Source: Podarcis cretensis
Lineage: Eukaryota
Reading direction: 5' to 3'
NCBI GenBank assembly: GCA_951804945.1
Contig: OX638157.1
Coordinates: 54,126,001-54,190,000 of the forward strand
DNA length: 64,000 bases
In this document: piece after piece, positions 4,753-59,802 of the stretch
Position numbering within the stretch: position 1 is the first letter of the stretch
How the letters are laid out: each line of letters begins with the position of its first letter
Made by a program: the position numbers and the translations under genes
Notes under the pieces: generated by a model
Database searches by the model: none
What the model was told of the DNA's origin: nothing
What the model saw: the letters and a program-made list of their open reading frames with translations, nothing else

Positions 4753-5045
4753 GTAAAGCTAAAGGGACCCCTGACCATTAGGTCCAGTCGTGACCGACTC
4801 TGGGGTTGCGGGGCTCATCTCACTTTGCTGGCCGAGGGAGCCGGCATACAGCTTCCGGGTCATGCAGCTAGCATGACTAAGCCAATTCTGGCAAACCAGA
4901 GCAGCGCACGGAAACACCGTTTACCTTCCCATCAGAGCGGTACCTATTTATCTACTTGCACTTTGACGTGCTTTCGAACTGCTAGGTTGGCAGGAGCAGG
5001 GACCGAGCAATGGGAGCTCACCCCGTCATGGGGATTCGAACCACT
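4753..5045 (-). mobile_element. Sauria/Squam1-type SINE, 5'-truncated, inserted in an older palindromic MITE
   Basis: AAAGGGACCCCTGACCATTAGGTCCAGTCG...GGGATTCGAACC matches the other copies. The flanks join into the AACTACAGTTCC MITE family. Confidence 0.9.
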
Positions 5046-6579
5046 GTCCTAATAACTCTCAGCACCCTTAACAAACTACAGTTCCAATGATTCTTTGTGA
5101 GAAGCCATAACTGTATGATGCCACTTTAAATGTGCAGTGCAGCTGGGGTTGATAAGTGATAAGAAGCTGCCTTATGCCCCCTCAGACTATTGCCTAGCTA
5201 ATTCAGTGGCTGTCAGCAGCAATACACAGTCTCCAGATAGAGATGCTAGTAACTGAAGCAGGGATTCCCAGCACACAAAGCAAGTCCTCTGCTAATGATA
5301 TCTGATCCCCCACCCCCCACAAAAAAGAAAAAAAGAAATCTGTGCTGAATATCAGCTGAAGATTGGAGGTGGTCTTCTGTGTGGGCACTTCTTTTTCCCC
5401 TTCAAAGAACCTCAAAGCTACACAAGACCCATGTAACACTGTTCCTCAATTATGCATTGCTGTGATCTACTTTGTTGGGTTGAGGGCAAAGAAGAATGGC
5501 ATCAAATAGCCCACCTATCTTTGGGGGATTGCCATTAAACAGTTATTTTCTTGACAGAAATAATGTTATACCCTGCACAATGTCATTGGACTACAAAGGA
5601 GATGGCTTTACTTCGCACTTATACTCAGGGTTTAACAAGGGCGCTGCTGAAACCATCTTTGGTAGTAAACAATCTGTATTGATCTGTATCTCGCTCAAAT
5701 TCTCTATGATCGTTGTTCCACAGCAATCAGCCTCTTCTAAACATTGAAAGAACAACCAAAGAAAATGGTGCCTTGAAATAATTTTTCTCCCTACTTTTGG
5801 AAAAGGAAGAGTGCATGTGCTCACATATAACACACTTAAATGTAGCCTCCCTTTGATAGGCTTATTTTAACTTCCCTTTATGGTATCTATTTTTGTGCCT
5901 CTTCACATTGTTTGGAATGGTAGCTAAAAGAGTTTGCACGCTCTCTGATTAAGAATAGGAGCAAATAAGCAGTCTGCTCATGTAGTCTGCTTTCTTTTTC
6001 TAGGTCTTACAATTTCAGACTATGAGGTGGAAAAGACATACTAGATTTCCCATTTTACCTAAGTGGCAATCTATAAGCAATTATTTGGTTTTAGTGGATT
6101 AATTCTTTTTATGCTGTTTTTTATGCTGCTATATTCTATGATGAAGTTGTATATGGTGGATATTTTTTGCAGTTCTATGTTGCTAGTAGGTTTCCTTTGT
6201 ATAGTAAGCCACTTCGATTATTGGTATAAAAAGTGAGGTATAATTAATCTAAACAAATAAATGCATCAATCTCCTCTGCATTAAGAAATAACACCATAAC
6301 ACCCACCCACCCCTATACTAACAAAATAAATATGATAGGGAAGATAGATTACAACTCTTTTCGGTATACAGTTTCTCTTTCTAGGTATATATGTACCAGG
6401 AGGTCTTTTTATTATTATTTTAAAATGAAAGCATTCAAATATGTAACCCCTGGCTTGCCATCTGAAATGGTACAGCCCATCAGTAGATACTTTGAGTGAG
6501 TGCTATTATTGTTTGAGCTGCTCCTAGACTATGCACATTTATGATCACATAAAATACTGCCCAGATCTATAGTATCTAT

Positions 6580-8261: not shown

Positions 8262-9042
8262 TAGGGATGGAAGGATCTGTCAATTTCAGTTTTCACAGTT
8301 TCTCATTTTCACAATCTTAAATTCAGTTCTCCACATTTCTGCAGCAATTTGCAAATTTCTTCTAAAAAACACATTTTTGTATGCAGTTTTGAGTGACGTA
8401 TACATTTCTGCAATTTATCCTAGGTAAAGGTAAAGGTAAAGGTACCCCTGCCCGTACGGGCCAGTCTTGACAGACTCTGGGGTTGTGCGCCCATCTCACT
8501 TAAGAGGCCAGGGGCCAGCGCTGTCCGGAGACACTTCCGGGTCACGTGGCCAGCGTGACATCGCTGCTCTGGCGAGCCAGAGCCGCACACGGAAACGCCG
8601 TTTACCTTCCCGCTGGTAAGCGGTCCCTATTTATCTACTTGCACCCGGAGGTGCTTTCGAACTGCTAGGTTGGCAGGCGCTGGGACCGAGCAGCGGGAGC
8701 GCACCCCGCCGCAGGGATTCGAACCGCCGACCTTTCAATCGGCAAGCCCTAGGCGCTGAGGCTTTAACCCACAGCGCCACCTGCGTCCCACAATTTATCC
8801 TAACATTAGGATAAATTTTTGTATGGGATTTTCATCGATATGCACAATTTCCCCATATAGAGTCATCTTTGTAAACACTGGCAGGTAGGAGAGCTGCATC
8901 ACAAAATTCAGATAAGTGCAAATTGCAAAGGCAATTTGGTTCTCCTATAGTTTCAGAACCTGTTTCAGGTTCTCCTATAGTTTCAGAATCTGATGGATCT
9001 AGCTTTAAATGTGAGCTGAATTTACTTCTCCCCCTCTACCTA
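8262..9042. mobile_element. hAT-like MITE (TAGGGATG-TIR family) containing a Sauria SINE
   Basis: TAGGGATG left end; 8-bp TSD CTGATCAA (8254-8261) / CTGATCAC (9043-9050). Confidence 0.8.
8423..8790 (-). mobile_element. Full-length Sauria SINE (GGTACCCCTGCCCGTACGGG subfamily)
   Basis: (ACCTTT)n tail, CpG-rich body, 12-bp TSD CAATTTATCCTA (8411-8422 / 8791-8802). Confidence 0.95.
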
Positions 9043-12032: not shown

Positions 12033-12382
12033 AAGGTAAAGGGACCCCTGACCATTAGGTCCAGTCGTGGCTGCCTCTGGGGTTGCGACACGCATCTTGC
12101 TTTATAGGCCGAGGGAGCCGGCATACAGCTTCCAGGTCATGTGGCCAGCATGACTAAGCTGCTTTTGGCGAACCAGAGCAGCACACGGAAACACCGTTTA
12201 CCTTCCTGCCGGAGCGGTCCCTATTTATTTACTTGCACTTTGACATGCTTTTGAACTGCTAGGTTGGCAGAAGCAGGGACTGAGCAACGGGAGCTAACCC
12301 CGTTGCAGGGATTTGAACCACCGACCTTCTGATCAGCAAGTCCTAGGCTCTGTGGTTTAACCCACAGTACCACCTGCGTCCC
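12033..12382 (-). mobile_element. Full-length Sauria SINE
   Basis: 17-bp TSD TTAACCTGGGATGCATA (12016-12032 / 12383-12399). Confidence 0.95.
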
Positions 12383-12656
12383 TTAACCTGGGATGCATAG
12401 CACTGGTCAAATCTCTTATTGTTGCAATGTTGGCAGGAATACTGGTCGTACCTGTCTCCTCTTCCCCTCCCCAAGCTACTGGGGAGCTTGCTGGGACAAC
12501 ATTTGAACACTGTAGATTTCCTTATTGGCAGACTGTCCCAATTTGAAATGGGTGGCTCCATCTAAGCAAGCCTGTCCTGTGGGAAGTGGGGAGGTTCAGA
12601 ACACCTTTCTATTTTCTTGATTATTATTTTTTAAAGGAGCTGGTGTTTATTTATGG

Positions 12657-13968
12657 TGATCCCTTAGACCTATCCAATTACCGCCCAGTTTCAAATCTTC
12701 CATATCTGGGTAAGGTAATTGAGAGAGCGGTTGCTAAACAGCTTGGTAGGTTTCTGGAGGAAACATCGGCTTTAGATCCATTTCAGTCCGGTTTCCGTCC
12801 TGGTTTTGGGACCGAGACGGCTCTGGTTGCCCTAACAGATGATCTCCGTAGACAACTGGTCGACATGGTCGATCATGATCTTCTCAACCACCGCCTCGCA
12901 GACGTGGGGATACAGGGCATAGCCCATAACTGGCTGTGCTCTTTTATCTCTGGTCGGGGACAGAGGGTGGCACTAGGGAGGGAAATGTCGTCACGCCATT
13001 CCTTGGTGTGTGGAGTGCCGCAGGGCGCAATTCTCTCCCCGATGCTTTTTAACATCTTTATGCGCCCCCTTGCCCAGATTATCTGGAGATTTGGGCTGGG
13101 CTGTCACCAATATGCTGATGACACTCAGCTCTATCTGCTGATAGATGGCCACACTGACTCGGCCCCGAACACACTGACCAGATGCTTGGAAGCTGTGGCT
13201 GGATGGTTTTGTGGGAGCCGATTGAAACTAAATCCTTCGAAGACAGAGGTCCTATGGCTGGGTCCGGATGGCATGGGGATGAGGGACCAACTCCCTTCTC
13301 TTGCGGGGGCCCATTTATTGCCATTGCCTTCCATTAAGAGTTTGGGTGTAATCCTTGACGCCTCCCTTTCCATGGAGGCGCAAGTTACAGCAACAGCCAA
13401 GGTGACATTTTTCCACCTTCGCCGCATCAAGCAGTTGGTCCCTTACCTTTCCCGCCCCGACCTGGCCACAGTGATCCATGTGACGGTCATCTCCAGGCTT
13501 GACTACTGTAATTTGCTCTACGCGGGGCTGCCCTTGAAGCTGACCCAGAAACTCCAGAGGGTGCAGAATGCTGCAGCGAGGCTCCTCACGGGGTCTCTGC
13601 CATGGGAGCATATTCACCCAGTGCTTTTCAAACTGCACTGGCTCCCGATAGAGTACAGGGCCTGATTTAAGGTGCTGCTTTTGACCTTTAAAGCCCTTCA
13701 TGGCCTAGGACCCTCATACCTACGGGACCGCCTCTCCTGGTATGCCCCACGGAGAGCCTCAAGGTCCATAAATAACAACACCCTAGTGGTCTCAGGCCCT
13801 AAGGAAGTTAGATTGGCTTCAACCAGAGCCAGGGCCTTTTCAACTCTGGCTCCGGCCTGGTGGTACGCTCTGCCTCATGAGACCAGGGCCCTGCAGGATC
13901 TGATTTCTTTCCGCAGGGCCTGTAAGACAGAGTTGTTCCACCTGGCCTTTGGCTTGGAGCCAATTTGA
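12657..13968 (+). pseudogene. L2 ORF2 reverse transcriptase pseudogene
   Basis: ORFs 12586-13665 and 13672-13968 are in the same frame, split by a TGA. The LDLSAAF segment is missing between RRQL and DMVDH. Confidence 0.9.
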
Positions 13969-21324: not shown

Positions 21325-22329
21325 CACTGCTGTCTATCTCAATGGCTTAGATCTTGAGAAGCACTCAGGGAAGATGGTTGTCAGAATGTGATTCCACACA
21401 TTCTCCCCTCTGCAACCCCATGCCCTCAAGACCACTCCTTAGGGAGAGAGGACCAGCTGATTGGAATGGCTTTCAGCATGGGAGAGTGAGTTGATGGGCC
21501 ATCACTCAAAAGCAAGTGGAGTCACCTTCTGTAAGCAGAAGTCCGTAATTTCAGGGAACCTGCCATTGGGTGATTGCAAGGGGAGCTGGTTTCAGTTTTG
21601 ACTCCATTCAACATGTTCCAAAGCTTTAAAGCCACAGCCCCTTGCCTCATGTTCAGGCAGCAGCTGTTATAAAATGTTGGCTATAGAAACTCTTGCAGAC
21701 TCTTCAGGTCCAGTGGGAGAAGATCACAGGTAATAAGGAACAGTGGGAAGCAGTTCGGGAGTATTAAGGTCTAACTGTACATTTTCTTGGCTACTTTTGC
21801 TTAGTTATAGCTTCCTTTCTGCTCCTACGCAACTCCCCCTAGAGGATGTTCTACTGCCATATAGCAATGTATGAAGTTTTGTGTTCCATGGAAAATAATA
21901 GATTTCTCCCATTTTCCAGGTAGTTCTAAACTTAGTAACAACCCATATGATTTCCAGTAACGCTGTTGTTACAGTTAGTCATGAAAAAAGAGGAAAACCA
22001 GTATAAATAAATTAGCTGCATTCTGAAATGCATCGTGAAGAGACCAGAATTTCATTTTGCCACCATTTTCAAACTGTATCTTGTTTATTTTGCAGAATTG
22101 CATGTTGTTTTAGATGTGCTTTAAAACACAGCAGCTACTGTAAGTTCCACTTCTTCCAATTTGCCAGTATGTTAAGGGAAGTTTTCTAACATTTCTCATT
22201 AATATTATTTTTCACTTTCAGCAGACCCCCAAACTTAACCTGTTTATTAAATGAGACAACTCACTGGGAGATATGTGATTGGAACTCCTATGGGCTGACT
22301 TGTTTTGTTTTGAGTTCAAAGCAGCTGTA

Positions 22330-22674
22330 AAGGTAAAGGTAAAGGGACCCCTGACCATTAGGTCCAGTCGTAACTGACTCTGGGGTTGTGGCGCTCATCT
22401 CGCTTTATTGGCCGAGGGAGCCAACGTACAGCTTCCGGGCCATCTGGCCAGTATGACTAAGCCGCTTCTGGCGAACCAGAGTAGCGCACGGAAACACCGT
22501 TTACCTTCTCGCCTATTTATCTACTTGTATTTTGACATGCTTTCCAACTGCTAGGTTGGCAGGAACAGGGACCAAGCAACGGGAGCTTACCCTGTCATGG
22601 GGATTCGAACTGCCGACCTTCTGATCGGCAAGTCCTAGACTCTGTGGTTTAACCCACAGTGCCACCCGCGTCCC
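22330..22674 (-). mobile_element. Full-length Sauria SINE
   Basis: 15-bp TSD TTCAAAGCAGCTGTA (22315-22329 / 22675-22689). Confidence 0.95.
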
Positions 22675-24219: not shown

Positions 24220-24370
24220 ATATTTAAAGCCCGTTGCTTCCACCAAATAATTCTGGAAACTGTAGTTAAGTCTTCACAGAGCTACAATTCCCAGCACTCT
24301 CAACAAGCTACAGTTCCCATGATTCTTTGGGTTAAGCCATGGGCTTTAACTGGACAGTGTAGGTGTGGCC
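24220..24370. mobile_element. Palindromic MITE (GAAACTGTAGTT...CTACAGTTCCC family)
   Basis: Same motifs recur near 5070, 57980 and 59500-59570. Confidence 0.6.
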
Positions 24371-30058: not shown

Positions 30059-30806
30059 TGCATTATGAGGGCACAATTCATTTCTTTGCCCTGGTAATGT
30101 GTCCCACGATGTTCTCTTGAACTGGTGTAGCAGTAAGAGATTGCTCGTCTGTTCTAGTATCCATTTGTGCACCCTTCACCCCCCCAAAAAAAAATTAATA
30201 ATTTTTGACCATTCATTGGCTGGGTTGGAACAAAACAAAACTCCTGAAAAGTCATAGGACTAGGGAGAGAAGAGAGATCTCTTTGAAAATTTCAGGAAAG
30301 AGTTGTCACTTACCATACTTAACCTTTATGAGGTGGTCAATGATTTTCCATGTTTCATGCTTTTAAAACTATTTTAGTAAGCAGCTTGCAGCAAAAATAA
30401 GTCTCTTTCTGCATCTTCTCACAGGCTGGAACATCTTGGGAATGATGCAACATTCACATCATGTTGCTCCCAAGGCATTCTGGGATGTGTAGATGGAAGA
30501 GAGCAGTGCTTTTCACTGGTAACACTGCCTGGTGAGACACAGTAAGATGATGGCGATCATCATCATCACCCACCCATCTGACTGGATTGGCCCAGTCACT
30601 CTGGGCAGCTTCCAATAAAATATTAAAACCTCCCTGTACAGAACAGCCTTTTTGAACATCTCAAAATAATTCATCTCCAGAAAATCACCACACACTCTCT
30701 CATTTTTGCAGTGGGGGCGGGGAGGATATTTTGGGGGAGTGAGAAGCAATTTTTCTTAGAAAGGAACACTTGTTCTTCATCCTTCCTGGTGTACTTGGGA
30801 CTATTT

Positions 30807-31170
30807 AAAGGTAAAGGTACTCCTTCCCATACGGGCCAGTCGTGTCCGACTCTAGGATTGCGCGCTCATCTCGCTCAAGAGGCCAGGAGGCAGCGCTGTC
30901 CGGAGACACTTCCGGGTCACGTGGCCAGCATGACTAAGTGGCATCTGGCGAGCCAGCACCAGCGCCACACACGGAAACGCCGTTTACCTTCCTGCTATAA
31001 AGCGGTACCTATTTATCTACTTGCACTTAGGGGTGCTTTCGAACTGCTAGGTGGGCAGGAGCTGGGACCGAACAACGAGAGCTCACCCCGCCGCGGGGAT
31101 TCAAACCACCGACCTTGCGATCAGCAAGTCCTAGGCACTGAGGTTTTACCCACAGTGCCACCCGCGTCCC
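30807..31170 (-). mobile_element. Full-length Sauria SINE (same subfamily as 8423)
   Basis: AAGGTAAAGGTAC..ACGGGCCAGTC...CACCCGCGTCCC; no clear TSD. Confidence 0.93.
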
Positions 31171-39090: not shown

Positions 39091-39789
39091 TATTGTTGTG
39101 CATTTGGCAAGGCCTACACTCTAGCAGGGGGCTGAGAGATAAATCAGATTGCTTTACTTTTAGTTGGCGAATCATGTAAATACATGAGTGATCCTGTTTA
39201 GGTTGCTTGTTTAATCAAAAGGATTCCCAGGTAGGCATTTTGAAAGAGTCCCAGTTCATTAACCATCCAAGAAAGTGAAGTAAAATTTATTCTGTTTTTT
39301 CTCTAGTTGCCATTTCCTATTTGGGTGTTTTTTCCTCCACTTGATTGACATCTGTATAGTACTGAGACCTTTTAACTGCAGTACAAATGACAAGGGAATC
39401 ACCACAAATAGATAACGTCTAGTTTGAATAATATTGCTTTTGTGAACCACAATGCTAAATTGACATACTTTGGAGTATTCTTGTTGACAATGGAACTTTT
39501 TAAAATGAGTCTTTTCCTATATATTTTTAGCTTCAGTTACAAGTGTACAATACTGATTCAAAGCTCCATACTTATCTTTCCAATTCTGGGTATCTGTACA
39601 TGAAATAGTTCAACTATATGGTGAATAGGGTATGTGTTTGAAGCAGAAACTAAACAATTTCACACTCAGAATTTCCAACTTATTTCGCTTGTTTTTTAAA
39701 AAAAGTTACCATTCATGTTTGGACATTTTGTTCCAAAATTTCATGAGGGTTTATTTTTTATTTTATTTTTATTGTTTATTGAGTAATCC

Positions 39790-43500: not shown

Positions 43501-43853
43501 ATAGTGGAAGGCCAGAGCCTTCCAACTTTGTACTTCACTGAGAGAAAACAAATAACTTAATTCTGAAAGTCAAACTAGCAAGACCACTTGACATCAATAC
43601 TCATTGGATTTAAAACATGGCCCTCCTTTTTTATTGCATATCCATGACAATATCTGCTTGTTATGCTATGGCCACACATGAGCCTGCTCTTAATAGTGGT
43701 TGTGTCTGCAAAAGTTTTGGGGCAGTCACACTGCTTCATTTCTAACCACTGCATATCCCATAATTTCCTGCTGAAATCCCATAACTTTGTATACCACAAA
43801 TGTTCTGGTTGATTTTATCCTGCTTTTGTTGTTCTCTTACCCCTCTGGACAGC

Positions 43854-44106
43854 AGAAGAAGAAGAAGAAGAGTTTGGATTTGATATCCCGCCTTTCACTC
43901 CCCTTCAGGAGTCTCAAAGCGGCTAACATTCTCCTTTCCCTTCCTCCCCCACAACAAACACTCTGTGAGGTAAGTGGGGCTGAGAGACTTCAAAGAAGTG
44001 TGACTGGCCCAAGGTCACCCAGCAGCTGCATGTGGAGGAGCGGAGACTCGAACCCGGTTCCCCAGATTACAAGACTACCGCTCTTAACCACTACACCACA
44101 CTGGCT
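43854..44106 (-). mobile_element. tRNA-derived SINE (Squam3-like)
   Basis: Antisense reads AGCCAGTGTGGTGTAGTGGTTAAGAGC (A box), GGGTTCGAGTC (B box) and a (TTC)n tail; matches 54607-54871. Confidence 0.9.
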
Positions 44107-44345
44107 AATGTGGTAGCATCAGAAACGCCGGAAAAAATCCACTACGGATGCATTATGGTGTTAAGAACATTCTACAGAATACATAGACAATAAAACACCA
44201 GTCCAGAGGAGCCGTTACTTGCTCAATCCATATTTTATTTTTAGGTGTGGGAAGAAGATCCATTGATGGGCACTCAATGCAGAGCACAAATTGGGAAGTG
44301 AAGAGTTGTGGTTCATATTGTTGTAAGATTTGGGGTTTGGGACTG

Positions 44346-45159
44346 GAAAGCGTGTTCTCCTTCATGGAGAGCACGTGTTGCGGTGGGGTCTGCTGAGCCA
44401 CCCCTCTGTTACCAGGCAGGGTCTCTAAAGATGGCCTGGGGCAGTGATTGGTTCACTGGGTTGCTGGGGTAAAAGTTATGTTGCAATTTTGGTGGGAGGG
44501 GTAAAATGTTTAAATACTCTGCACGCAGCCTGGAGCTTTCTCTTTGCTGCGTGCAACGGATCACCCGCCCACCCGCCCTTGAGTAAGGGGTTGTTGCATT
44601 GACCTTGCTATGCCTGTCATGGGGTCGTCTGCCGTTCGGGCAGGGGCCTGGTAGGAATTTTGTCCATCTGGCTGATTGGCTGGGCCATTTGGTTTTTGCC
44701 TACTGCGTAGCAAATCGTCACAACTTGTAAGGTTGCGGTTAGGCATTGGTTATAAATTGGTGGAGGAGGGGTTAGGATAGGCTGGGCCTGCCCCTCCATG
44801 GTTGCTGTGGAAAGGGAATTCCGTTAAAGGAATCCTGGGGCTTGCCATCTTTTTGTCCAATCCCTGGAATGGGACTAGGGCCGGCAAGCCTTCGGGGAGC
44901 ATGCGGATGAGAATTGAGGGTCTGTGACTCAGCTCCATTTCTCCCCGACTTGTTTTCCCGCACTGTCTTTCGGTGGTGCCCGGAAGTCAGTTCTGTCCCC
45001 AGGCAGGGGGACAGATAGTCTTAACCAATGCCTAAACAACAACTCACGGTTTTGTATTTAAATAAAGTTGTAGCCAAAATTATGCCAAAAACCTTAAACA
45101 AAAATTAAGTGTGCGTTGTGAGTTATTTGGGGGGGTGGCTTGGGGACCTCGACACGCAA
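44346..45159 (+). mobile_element. Non-coding LTR-like element, probably a DIRS/Ngaro-type solo repeat, with a structured-RNA core
   Basis: GAAAG plus hairpin at the start; ATTGG, GC box and TTTAAATA; TCACCCGCCCACCC; AATAAAGTTGTAGCC; ends CCTCGACACGCAA; no TSD. Motif order is shared with 58070-58843. Confidence 0.75.
44446..44516 (+). promoter_or_regulatory. Putative Pol II promoter of the element (reverse CCAAT, GC box, TATA-like)
   Basis: GATTGG at 44446, GGTGGGAGGGG at 44491, TTTAAATA at 44509. The same order occurs on the minus strand at about 55002-54907 in the divergent copy. Confidence 0.5.
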
Positions 45160-45295: not shown

Positions 45296-45649
45296 GCGGG
45301 TGGCGCTGTGGTCTAAACCACAGAGCCTAGGGCTTGCTGACCAGAAGGTCGGTGATTCGAATCCACACGATGGGGTGGACCACTGTTCGGTCCCAGCTCC
45401 TGCCCACCTAGCAGTTCGAAAGCACGTCAAAGTGCAAGTAGATAAATAGGTACCACTCCGGCAGGAAGATAAACAACATTTCCATGCTCTGCTATGGTTC
45501 GCTAGAAGTGGCTTAGTCATGCTGGCCACATGACCTGGAAGCTGTCTGCGGACAAACGCCGGCTCCCTCGGCCTACAGAGCGAGATGAGTGCGCAACCCC
45601 AGGGTCGTCCGTGACTGGTCCTAACGGTCAGGGGTACCTTTACCTTACC
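45296..45649 (+). mobile_element. Near-full-length Sauria SINE
   Basis: GCGGGTGGCGCTGTGG...GGTCAGGGGTACCTTTACCTTACC. Confidence 0.93.
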
Positions 45650-47268: not shown

Positions 47269-47515
47269 AAGGTAAAGGCTAAAGGGACCCCTGACCGTTA
47301 GGTCCAGTCGTGACCGACTCTGGGGTTGCAGCGCTCATCTCGCTTTATTGGCCGAAGGAGCCAGCGTACAGCTTCCGGGTCATGTGGCCAGCATGACTAA
47401 GCCGCTTCTGGAGAACCAAAGCAGCGCACGGAAACGCCGTTTACCTTCCCGCCGGAGTGGTACCTATTTATCTACTTGCATTTTGATTTGCTTTTGAACT
47501 GCTAGGTTGGCAGGA
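47269..47515 (-). mobile_element. 5'-truncated Sauria SINE
   Basis: TSD AGGTGTACTATA (47257-47268) / AGGTGTAGTATA (47516-47527). Confidence 0.93.
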
Positions 47516-54059: not shown

Positions 54060-55060
54060 TGTGACCCACGGGAGCAGCACATAACCAGACTGTACAATGG
54101 TGATGGGATAAAATCAGGCCAAATCTTTATTGACAGCAGCAGGCAGCAGAAAGGTTAGCATGGCAATGGGACAGGATGTGTTCATCATTACACAAGCCTC
54201 ACATTGATGGAATGGACCCAAACCTGTTCCATGGGAGTTGGTCAGTGTTGAACCTTACCATGGTGCATGCTAAACAAGCAAGGTCTCACTGGGCAACCAG
54301 GATGCAGATTCCAACCAGGCAGATATCCCAACCCGAGCTTAGGGGGTGCTGAGGTCAAACCTACCCTCAGACACCTTATGGTCCCTCACTATACTTTGTT
54401 GTTCCAGCCCAATTCCATTTCCACCCTCAACAAACAACGTTCTTCAGCCTAACAAAGGAAGGCCATAATTTTACTGAGGGAAAGGGGGGGGGGGCAAGTG
54501 CCAATCAGGTTGAGAGACAAAAAAATCCTTTTTTGTCCTGCCAACCAGAGACTCAGAATTGCTCAGTGAAGGCCCTAACCTGAGAGTGGGCAGGTGGGAA
54601 GCTTTTGAGAGCCAGTGTGGTGCAGTGGTTAAGAGTGATAGACTGGTAATCTGGTGAACCGGGTTCGCGTCTCCACTCCTCCACATGCAGCTGCTGGGTG
54701 ACCTTGGGCTAGTCACACTTCTTTGAAGTCTCTCCACCTCACTTACCTCACAGAGTGTTTGTTGTGGGGGAGGAAGGGAAAGGAGATTGTTAGCCACTTT
54801 GAGACTCCTTCGGATAGTGATAAAGCAGGATCAAATCCAAACTCCTCCTCTTCTTCTTCTTCTTCTTCTTCAACCAAAATGGCCCTGAGCTCTAGGGGAA
54901 GCAGCCTCATATAGGCTTCCCCCTCCCCTTTTCAAGGGCTCATGGGACAGCTTTTTCCCATGAGCCCATCACATGGACAAGATACTGGGGAAAAGATCCA
55001 ATGTGTTTATTGGCTGGAGAACAAGGCTTATAATGGATTGAATATATGACCCCTAAGCAC
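54060..55060 (-). mobile_element. Divergent member of the 44346-type family, interrupted by a SINE
   Basis: Minus strand reads ATTGG, GGGGAGGGG, TATATGA, [SINE], TCCCACCTGCCC, GGCAGG..AGGATTTTTTTGTC..CTGATTGGC, AATAAAGATTTGGCC. The 5' boundary is uncertain. Confidence 0.55.
54607..54871 (+). mobile_element. tRNA-derived SINE (Squam3-like)
   Basis: GAGAGCCAGTGTGGTGCAGTGGTTAAGAG, GGGTTCGCGTC and a (TTC)n tail. Confidence 0.9.
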
Positions 55061-57756: not shown

Positions 57757-58069
57757 ATGCTAGTTGGGAGGGGATAGAGGAGACGGGGGAAGCTGGTTTA
57801 GTGTTAAAGCCATTGGTCTCAGTGTTGAAAGGGAGTGTAGATTAGATTACCTAATTAGATTAATCTCTCCTAGATGCTGCACAGGTTTAGAGGCAGCCTT
57901 AAAATATGTTAGCTGAGAAGACAAAGTGGAGTTAGGCTACATTCATACCATACAATGCAAGCACATGGCTTTGCCCAAAGAATCATGGGAACTGTAGTTT
58001 ACCCCTGACAAAACTACAATTCCTAGAAATCTTAAACCATAGTTCTTGGCATTCTCTGGTAGAGCTATG

Positions 58070-58843
58070 TTGTGGTTCGAGGACCCGAACCCCACGCAGT
58101 GGAATGAAACACAAGGACACGTGATATAAGGTTAATGGGCAAGAAAAGGCCACAACTTTATTGATTACACAAGTGAAAAGGTATTGGCTTAGGCATTGGA
58201 TTACATCAGCTGACTCCACCCACTCGGAGAGGGGTGAGTCTAAAAAACAAAGTGGGTTTATTCACCAGTAGGTGGAGCCTGTTGATGCTAATCCAACTAT
58301 AAGCTCTCCCCTGATGTCACCGAGGGTCGTCCCATGGCCTCCCGCCAAGCAGGCATCGGACGGAATACATGACCGCTGGATTCCTTTAACGGAATACCCA
58401 AAAATTGAAGGCGCAGGCGATGGCCACACCTAGCCCTTCGACACACCACAACACATTATTCCAATGCCTAACCTACCCACCAATACCACAAAAGTTGTGA
58501 CGATTGCTACAAGGTAGGCGAAAAAACCAAAAAAGCCTAATGCCAAATGGAAAAATTCCTACCAGGCCCCCCGGACAACCAGGACGACCAACCTAAGGTC
58601 CATAGCAAGGCCAAAAGAAAACTGGAAACCCTGCTCTAAGGGAGTGGAGGGTGGGTGACTCGCGATGGGACAACGAAAAGTGAGGGCTGGAGGCTGGCGC
58701 TGCAGCAATTTAGGCTGCTGTACACGTCCCCTTGAAGGCGCCAGCCAGGTGAGTGGGAGGCAGGGGGCAAACGCCCCCTGCTTGAGGCGGAGTCCGGCTC
58801 CCAGCCACAACCACTCCCCTCTCTTGCAGGAGGAGAGTCTTTC
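58070..58843 (-). mobile_element. Non-coding LTR-like element, probably a DIRS/Ngaro-type solo repeat, with a structured-RNA core
   Basis: Minus strand reads GAAAG plus hairpin, TCACCCACCC, CCTTGCTATG, GGCCTGGTAGGAATTTTTCCA, GTAGCAATCGTCACAACTT, GGTTAGGCATTGG, TTCCGTTAAAGGAATCC, CCAATGCCTAA, AATAAAGTTGTGGCC, CCTCGAACCACAA. Inserted without a TSD into a MITE (57935-58869). Confidence 0.75.
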
Positions 58844-59802
58844 TATAAATGTGTGGTGTGGAAGTAGCCCTCGCGCACATGCGTTTGTTGCTTTTCTCTG
58901 GGAAAATTGAATGCTGCAAAAGGTTTTCTTAAAAAATAAATAAATTAGGTGCAAGTTCCAGATCTTTATTCGGTGGTACAAATGAGGCCATTTAGTTTCA
59001 TGCAGCACTGCCCGATCTTCTAGTGTTCCTGGGCAGATCTACACAGTGCTGTCCTCTATCTCCACACGTAAACTGGACTGTGCAAGCTCTTATTACCTGA
59101 ATATATTTACAGTCATCGTTCCGTGATGTTTCAATCCCCATCTGCTACAGTTGAAAAGAGAACAAAGTGTGGGTTAATTTCCTACAGCTGGATGCCTGCA
59201 CCTTTCCCTCAGCTAATTAGCATTGGCCCAAGGGACAGAGAAAAAAGGTGTCTCCAAGGCAAAAATCTAAACTCCCTTCTGACATGCCAGATGCACAGGA
59301 AAACGATGCAGTCTAGGAATCCAGAGCACATGAGAAAATATAGTTGTGTTTATTCCTATACTAACCTAGTTGCAAGGACAATAATATAAATCATTGCAAC
59401 CTTCTTCTAACCCAGTTATTGGCTCAGTCTTATTCTGGAGTGTTAGACCTTTAGGCTGCATCGACACCTACATTCAAGTCATGTTTTTCCCCAAAGAATC
59501 CTTGGAAGTATAATTCACCCTTCACAGGGCTACCATTCCCAGCATCCTTAACAAACTACAGTTTCCAGGATTCATGTGGGTGCTTTAAATATATGGTGCC
59601 TGACCCAAAAAGGCACAAAGGTCATGTGGCCGCAGTCCTCCCTAGTGTGGAGAGACGTATTGTATTTCTCTTCAAATTATAGTAATTATGTCTAAGTTTG
59701 CATCCACCTATAAATTAGTACATGGACAAATCTGTGTCCTCTATTGTCTTCTTCTTTTTGGTTGATGCCTTTCCGCTTTCCTTTTTTCCTCCGGCAATGC
59801 AT

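Follow-up and report, generated by a model that had tools for sequence, protein, structure and literature searches.

A predicted RNA junction with an ENE-like U-rich hairpin and long-range helices beside the poly(A) signal of a lizard repeat

Introduction

Does a repeat in a lizard genome encode an RNA that can hold its own poly(A) tail? This question is raised by a locus in a 64-kb stretch of lizard DNA (the window), where an initial annotation of the sequence placed an ENE-like hairpin enclosed by a long-range clamp. ENE triple helices are established RNA stabilisers, which occur in herpesvirus lncRNAs, in MALAT1/NEAT1 and in plant and fungal transposons. [quoted passage not shown] ENEs within TE RNAs, including ENEs inside LTRs, are known, and in Arabidopsis Evade the ENE directly raises mobility.

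Results

Two copies of the element are present in the window, copy A on the plus strand and copy B, whose core spans 58610-58148, inverted on the minus strand (Table 1). A sequence check recovered in copy A every string that the initial annotation had quoted, each at its position. The TATA-like TTTAAATA that precedes the folded domain may be a promoter element, and copy B carries a weaker TAAATT at the aligned place. The small 5′ hairpin of copy A can also be formed at the aligned place in copy B, and suggests an RNA start upstream of 44575. The GU-rich stretch, judged by its sequence, is a possible downstream polyadenylation element.

Table 1. Sequence and structural features of copies A and B, with positions in the window
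Feature	Copy	Position	Strand	Description and basis
TATA-like TTTAAATA	A	44519-44526	+	Upstream of the folded domain (sequence, alignment)
Small 5′ hairpin	A	44575-44591	+	GCCCUU/AGGGGU (MFE of copy A)
Three-way junction	A	44605-44713	+	P1 enclosing hairpin P2 and the U-loop hairpin
Clamp helix P1	A	44605-44613 with 44705-44713	+	UUGCUAUG(C) with (G)CGUAGCAA; core strings UUGCUAUG at 44605-44612 and CGUAGCAA at 44706-44713 (sequence, helix table)
Hairpin P2	A	44622-44649	+	Helix table, copy comparison
ENE-like hairpin	A	44650-44704	+	GGUAGG-AA-UUUUGU-CCA...UGG-UUUUU-G-CCUACU; lower stem GGUAGG/CCUACU, internal loop AAUUUUGU vs UUUUUG, closing stem CCA/UGG (sequence)
L1 5′ arm	A	44717-44726	+	Pairs with 45065-45074, overlapping the last As of AAUAAA; core ACAACUU 44720-44726 complementary to AAGUUGU 45065-45071
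L2 5′ arms	A	44731-44753	+	L2 44739-44752 (14 bp, perfect complement of 45022-45035); outer extension 44731-44735
Variable looped-out domain	A	44754-45020	+	~270 nt, little conserved except one hairpin
Conserved hairpin in variable domain	A	44818-44833	+	AUUCC-GUUAAA-GGAAU
L2 3′ arms	A	45021-45041	+	L2 45022-45035; extension 45037-45041
AAUAAA	A	45061-45066	+	Followed by the overlapping L1 3′ arm 45065-45074
GU-rich stretch	A	45111-45122	+	~45 nt past AAUAAA; a similar one in copy B
Three-way junction	B	58503-58609	-	Folding, helix table
ENE-like hairpin	B	58513-58563	-	GGUAGG, AAUUUUU, CCA...UGG, UUUUUUCG, CCUACC
L1 and L2 5′ arms	B	L1 58491-58501; L2 58456-58471	-	Domain fold, helix table
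Extension helix	B	Within 58456-58501	-	GGUAUUGG/CCAAUACC (domain fold, helix table)
L1 and L2 3′ arms	B	L2 58189-58204; L1 58149-58159	-	Domain fold, helix table
AAUAAA	B	58157-58162	-	Domain fold, helix table

The BLAST alignment of the two copies was confined to 44643-44726 (80% identity), and a k-mer comparison identified eight exact, collinear blocks of 10-19 nt common to both. Each of these blocks is a proposed pairing partner, the AUUCC-GUUAAA-GGAAU hairpin, or AAUAAAGUUGU, and the block letters are identical between the copies at 96 of 96 positions, with ~50% identity elsewhere. The expectation that the divergent second copy keeps all of the motifs was therefore borne out, in a sequence of which the rest is barely alignable. 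No further copy was found in the window: a scan with the motif pattern gave two matches (0.02 expected) and no third instance that might bear on the similar motif suggested for some vertebrate CR1 3′ UTRs, and a candidate at 39227 was rejected as a chance match. Among metagenome contigs a gapped ENE pattern gave just two bacterial chance matches, three patterns gave no match in viral contigs, and protein-word searches with the ORFs overlapping the element, aimed at lizard-run contigs, gave none either. The summed contig depth puts the related copies at a rough figure of tens.

Copy B is flanked by direct repeats of a short high-copy motif (57932-58035 and 59451-59551, 73% alike), of which fragments lie at 5073-5108 and 24305-24346. 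The motif may represent a MITE-like element, or else a repeat that hosts the copy B insertion. On the element strand of copy B, a GC-rich hairpin GGUUCG...CGAACC (58070-58095), absent from copy A, lies ~65-90 nt past AAUAAA.

Folded alone, the junction of copy A reached -46.5 kcal/mol (z = -2.45) and that of copy B -39.6 kcal/mol (z = -2.15), and the independent MFEs of both copies gave the same three-way junction of the P1 clamp, P2 and the U-loop hairpin. The reverse strands reached -28.7 kcal/mol (z = -0.93) for copy A and -24.6 kcal/mol (z = -0.92) for copy B. Because several of the pairs are G-U and the reverse complements fold worse, the junction fold belongs to the AATAAA strand. Furthermore, the substitutions that separate the copies preserve pairing: four of the six pairs in the inner 6-bp stem of P2 (P2b) are changed on both sides with the pairing intact, one pair of P1 is changed on both sides and still paired, and further consistent changes are found in P1 and P3. 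For the ENE-like hairpin of copy A, pair probabilities of 0.85-0.95 were calculated for the lower stem, and the U-tracts were predicted to be unpaired (p 0.8-1.0).

In both copies, the nucleotides of the ENE-like hairpin can alternatively form two small hairpins (44646-44672 and 44681-44702 in copy A). The two U-tracts then lie in loops of their own, at a cost in stability of 4-6 kcal/mol by single-sequence energies, and the arrangement could be a switch or a coincidence. RNAalifold favoured this alternative on the MAFFT alignment because the alignment sets hairpin P2 one base off register. A hammerhead or other ribozyme at the junction was also considered and rejected, as the core motifs are absent and Rfam gave no match.

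Reads of other family members informed the analysis of the long-range helices. Four libraries (two of bulk RNA-seq, one single-cell, and a small one whose type is uncertain) were used at a likeness of at least 90%; their reads pile on the conserved blocks only and therefore derive from other members of the family. In the predicted fold, L1 and L2 start six nucleotides past the junction, are nested, close the variable domain, and end in or beside AAUAAA, and the 3′ end of the RNA emerges next to the junction. The 495-nt domain of copy A gave z = -3.9 and the 485-nt domain of copy B z = -2.5. L2 is part of the MFE of both domains, with a pair probability of ~1.0 in copy A; its inner end carries two to three double changes between the copies and is still paired, and its outer extension reads GGUUG/CAAC(C) in copy A vs GGUAUUGG/CCAAUACC in copy B. 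The L1 helix of copy B comprises 11 bp; that of copy A contains one C·A mismatch at 44719/45072 and has, as it stands, a predicted probability of 0.04-0.06. L1 overlaps two As of AAUAAA in copy A and three in copy B. Once 60 nt of 5′ context were added, the long-range helices of copy B were lost from the MFE. Where copy A fails to pair with the 5′ arm, at 45021 and 45041, most or all of the reads from other family members bear a letter that does pair, and at 45072 all reads bear a letter other than that of copy A, one that pairs. Copy A is therefore a slightly decayed fossil of a better-paired source. The long-range clamp of L1 and the 14-bp L2, as first proposed, is supported by the compensatory changes between the copies and by these pairing letters.

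Retroviral R/U3 structures, namely the HIV-1 poly(A) hairpin and the HTLV-1 Rex-responsive element, act on 3′-end processing, and the long-range helices of the lizard element might mainly do likewise, with L1 burying the last As of AAUAAA, the clamp cutting the effective distance between signals, and the U-loop hairpin being incidental. The overlap of L1 with AAUAAA in both copies is as this explanation would have it, and the similarity and the GU-rich stretch run beyond AAUAAA in an LTR-like manner. We nevertheless regard it as improbable, as it leaves the conservation of both U-tracts and of the junction unexplained and relies on a helix of low predicted probability in copy A.

The same data bear on a reading of the blocks at the DNA level, as promoter or enhancer sites of an LTR U3 whose complementarity is a by-product. 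Suitable motifs can be named: two opposed CCAAT boxes, one inside each L2 arm, a CRE-like CGTCA, a kappaB-like GGGAATTCC, and AATAAA as a TATA box ~36 bp after CCAAT, the step from CCAAT at 45025 to AATAAA at 45061 being textbook promoter spacing. For protein-binding DNA, however, one would not expect a nested complementary partner for every block, compensatory double changes in P2b and L2, G-U pairs through which the junction folds far better on one strand, or majority read letters that pair at the mismatches of copy A, and such sites are therefore a very improbable explanation.

RNA depth over the element was 0-24 reads, vs hundreds on the flanking SINEs. The reads run in both directions, and the four libraries contained no pile of read starts or ends over the element and no polyadenylated ends at it; read starts at the promoter candidate TTTAAATA were not seen. 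The tissues sampled thus lend no support to an abundant, self-stabilised form of the ~550-nt non-coding Pol II transcript that had been postulated; for germline or embryo, the low depth is compatible with either presence or absence of such an RNA. We also rejected a small RNA transcribed by Pol III and terminating at the T-runs, since the candidate upstream motifs are confined to copy A and wrongly spaced.

The element does not end in a poly(A) tail. Weak homology, the GU-rich stretch and some family reads continue past AAUAAA, which therefore speaks more for an LTR-type unit than for a retroposed copy; together with copy B, which has no A-rich tail, this continuation makes the genomic copies unlike LINE-mobilised poly(A) retrocopies. 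The LTR-like signals present are the TATA-like box, AAUAAA and the GU-rich stretch, and the element class in best agreement is an LTR-type unit composed of a promoter, R with AAUAAA and U5. A 16-nt direct repeat around copy A (44320-44335 vs 45115-45132) was rejected as a target-site duplication, being no better than shuffles (56/200), and a search for TG/CA termini with a duplication gave no pair common to both copies. No partner LTR or gag/pol was found near the copies, and the ORFs flanking the element had no Pfam match. Copies A and B were also rejected as the inverted terminal repeats of a DIRS-like element: 13 kb separate the two, their divergence is far too great, and the sequence between them is crowded with SINEs and contains no RT. 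The stretch is best described as the 3′-terminal folded RNA domain, on the AATAAA strand, of a non-coding interspersed repeat that is probably LTR-type.

Other repeats surround the element. Copy A lies between two SINEs, one ending at 44106 and the other starting at 45296. The latter belongs to a very abundant tRNA-headed family found in both orientations (45296-45646, 4753-4995, 8433-8784, 12033-12377, 22325-22669, 30806-31165 and 47272-47515), with an RNA depth of hundreds to thousands; read joints that skip ~61-72 nt (45311-45328 to 45384-45393) point to a common subfamily without the skipped segment. The former is one of two copies, 89% alike, of a second SINE, whose head is tRNA-like and whose core is CCCAAGGTCACCCAGC (43851-44106 and 54610-54863), preceded by a (GAA)n run. 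The sole ARAGORN call in the window, a tmRNA at 43570-44125, overlaps one of the two copies and is spurious. A 359-aa ORF on the plus strand (12586-13665) contains a reverse-transcriptase domain (RVT_1, E 1.4e-24) and is probably a LINE fragment; the ENE-like descriptor given below has no match near it.

The U-rich loop itself can be set against an ENE feature by feature. Two tracts of about five U face each other in each copy, uninterrupted in copy B (U5 vs U6) and UUUUGU vs U5 in copy A; the G of UUUUGU is kept in most aligned reads, and in an expressed paralogue the 3′ tract is shorter by two Us. The tracts are conserved as sequence and the distal stem above them varies between the copies, a pattern characteristic of a loop in contact with a partner. 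On the upper side, C-G pairs abut both U-tracts and the closing stem has only 3 bp; the lower stem, GGUAGG/CCUAC, is G-C rich and offset by AA on one strand and by G or CG on the other. AAUAAA follows ~360 nt downstream of the loop on the same strand, and in the predicted fold the long-range helices set it beside the junction. By eye, neither copy has a conserved internal A-run of five or more besides AAUAAA, which leaves the tail as the sole A-rich partner available. Against an ENE stand the interrupted tract of copy A, the AA and G/CG spacers, the 3-bp upper stem, the ~360-nt distance, the shortened 3′ tract of the paralogue, the context-sensitive long-range helices of copy B, the alternative pairing, the lack of an Rfam match and the sparse reads in both directions. 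Copy B has a second small U internal loop (58527-58550, UUU vs UUUU) above the main loop; considered as part of a possible double ENE, it falls short of the length needed for five triples and has no counterpart in copy A.

Searches of both copies against Rfam 15, at the gathering threshold and at E up to 10, returned only chance-level snoRNA and miRNA matches with E above 1, and no family reached its threshold; Rfam may lack a model for PAN-type or TE ENEs. An ENE-style descriptor, written after the motif had been seen and combining a lower stem of 6 bp and a closing stem of 3 bp with a pair of facing U-tracts between them, matched only copies A and B in a scan of both strands of the 64 kb (0.017 expected), and by extrapolation would give hundreds of chance matches genome-wide. 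As the descriptor is post hoc and chance matches are many, the case rests on conservation and not on the pattern. The looseness of the descriptor, the comparison of two full copies and the near-background expression would all suit a functionless accident of two related fossils, which we consider the least credible of the explanations, given that neutral decay can yield neither 96 identical block letters out of 96 beside ~50% identity nor compensated stems.

A more serious rival accepts the fold and leaves the tail uninvolved, with the U-rich loop acting as a platform for a protein (hnRNP C, HuR, La or an Sm/Lsm ring) or as a recognition, packaging or dimerisation signal for the replication machinery. 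It accounts for all of the structural evidence equally well; the loop departs from a canonical ENE in its AA spacer, G interruption and 3-bp upper stem, its 5′ tract AAUUUUGU / AAUUUUU resembles an Sm site, and the conserved GUUAAA hairpin loop of the variable domain could serve kissing or dimerisation. However, one tract would suffice for an Sm or single-strand U-binding site, and the element has kept two facing tracts across deep divergence; Sm sites end by consensus in GG or GA, and the tract in the loop is followed by CC; and the placement of the 3′ end at the junction is left unexplained. We hold this rival to be unlikely, though deserving of attention.

Discussion

Collectively, block conservation, the shared junction, strand specificity, compensation and the read letters make it very likely that the element contains a selected RNA structure. 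The proposed ENE-like module with a clamp stands as an AATAAA-strand fold, with a U-loop hairpin in a junction and a long-range clamp; its likeness to an ENE holds in outline. Capture of the poly(A) tail by U-A-U triples, the ENE mechanism, would be the likeliest single mechanism, a tentative reading to which we assign a probability of about 0.4.

Under the ENE mechanism, cleavage and polyadenylation would come first, and the tail would then fold back into the U-rich loop, where it would form ENE-type U-A-U triples with the U-tracts; the triples would slow deadenylation and so leave more of the element RNA. P1 and L1 are a few nucleotides apart, and with both formed the 3′ end would lie ~15 bp of helix from the U-rich loop, a distance that a trailer of 15-25 nt could bridge. 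Tail capture would explain why the blocks were kept in lineages that have diverged almost beyond alignment. The fuller model, a junction-embedded squamate ENE to which long-range helices deliver the tail and in which the alternative pairing serves as a switch between a closed and a tail-binding state, is put forward as a possibility, and a rather doubtful one.

One review lists TE ENEs in plants, fungi, slime mould and stickleback retroviruses; a 2026 review adds no reptile TE ENEs, and in these reviews animal TE-borne ENEs are limited to the stickleback retroviruses. According to PMC10869381, which cites Zhang et al. 2017, anole lizards carry triple-helix modules of the MALAT1 type by the dozen. 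With the stickleback ENEs and the anole modules known, to call ENEs undescribed in vertebrate TEs would be too strong. If the ENE reading is true, the element would add a new host clade, an ENE embedded in a junction and long-range delivery of the tail; it would be the first amniote TE ENE, with a new tail-delivery architecture. It would mean that amniote mobile elements, too, use this counter-measure against deadenylation, and would provide a natural case in which tertiary folding, not linear proximity, brings a tail to its clamp. Whatever the loop does, the locus contributes a well-supported structured RNA domain in a vertebrate repeat.

Four known systems invite comparison. The element shares with the Sm site of Sm-class small RNAs the AAUUUUGU / AAUUUUU tract between two helices, and differs from it in the CC that follows the tract, the second conserved U-tract opposite, the long AAUAAA-bearing unit and the lack of a match to any snRNA family. 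The HIV-1 poly(A) hairpin, the HTLV-1 RexRE and other retroviral structures near poly(A) signals have no facing U-tracts. As in retroviral R/U3, part of AAUAAA lies within a helix, and hundreds of nucleotides near the 3′ end of the unit are looped out by long-range pairing; unlike there, facing U-tracts are present, and the LTR class of the lizard element is a probable assignment. With the MALAT1 triple helix and mascRNA, the element has in common a U-rich internal-loop element in multiple copies in a lizard genome. It has no encoded A-rich tract, the 3′ U-tract of copy A being followed by GCCUACUGCGUAGCAAAUCG, and no tRNA-like structure, Rfam giving no tRNA or mascRNA match in either copy; AAUAAA stands in their place, and the element is therefore not MALAT1-like.

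PAN-type ENEs comprise those of KSHV PAN RNA, the single- and double-domain ENEs of plants and fungi (rice TWIFB1, Arabidopsis Evade/Copia93) and those of stickleback retroviruses. Unlike in these, the lizard loop has AA and G/CG spacers before the lower stem, a G breaks one tract of copy A, the upper closing stem is only 3 bp long, and the hairpin is one arm of a three-way junction ~360 nt before AAUAAA. PAN-type ENEs lie within ~100-150 nt of the tail, whereas the lizard hairpin would rely on long-range helices for proximity; its host, moreover, is a squamate, and the candidate is known from sequence and predicted fold. The likeness lies in a hairpin with two facing U-tracts in a G-C-closed internal loop, placed upstream of a poly(A) signal on the same strand in the RNA of a mobile element, so arranged that it would work like, and may be, a PAN-type ENE.
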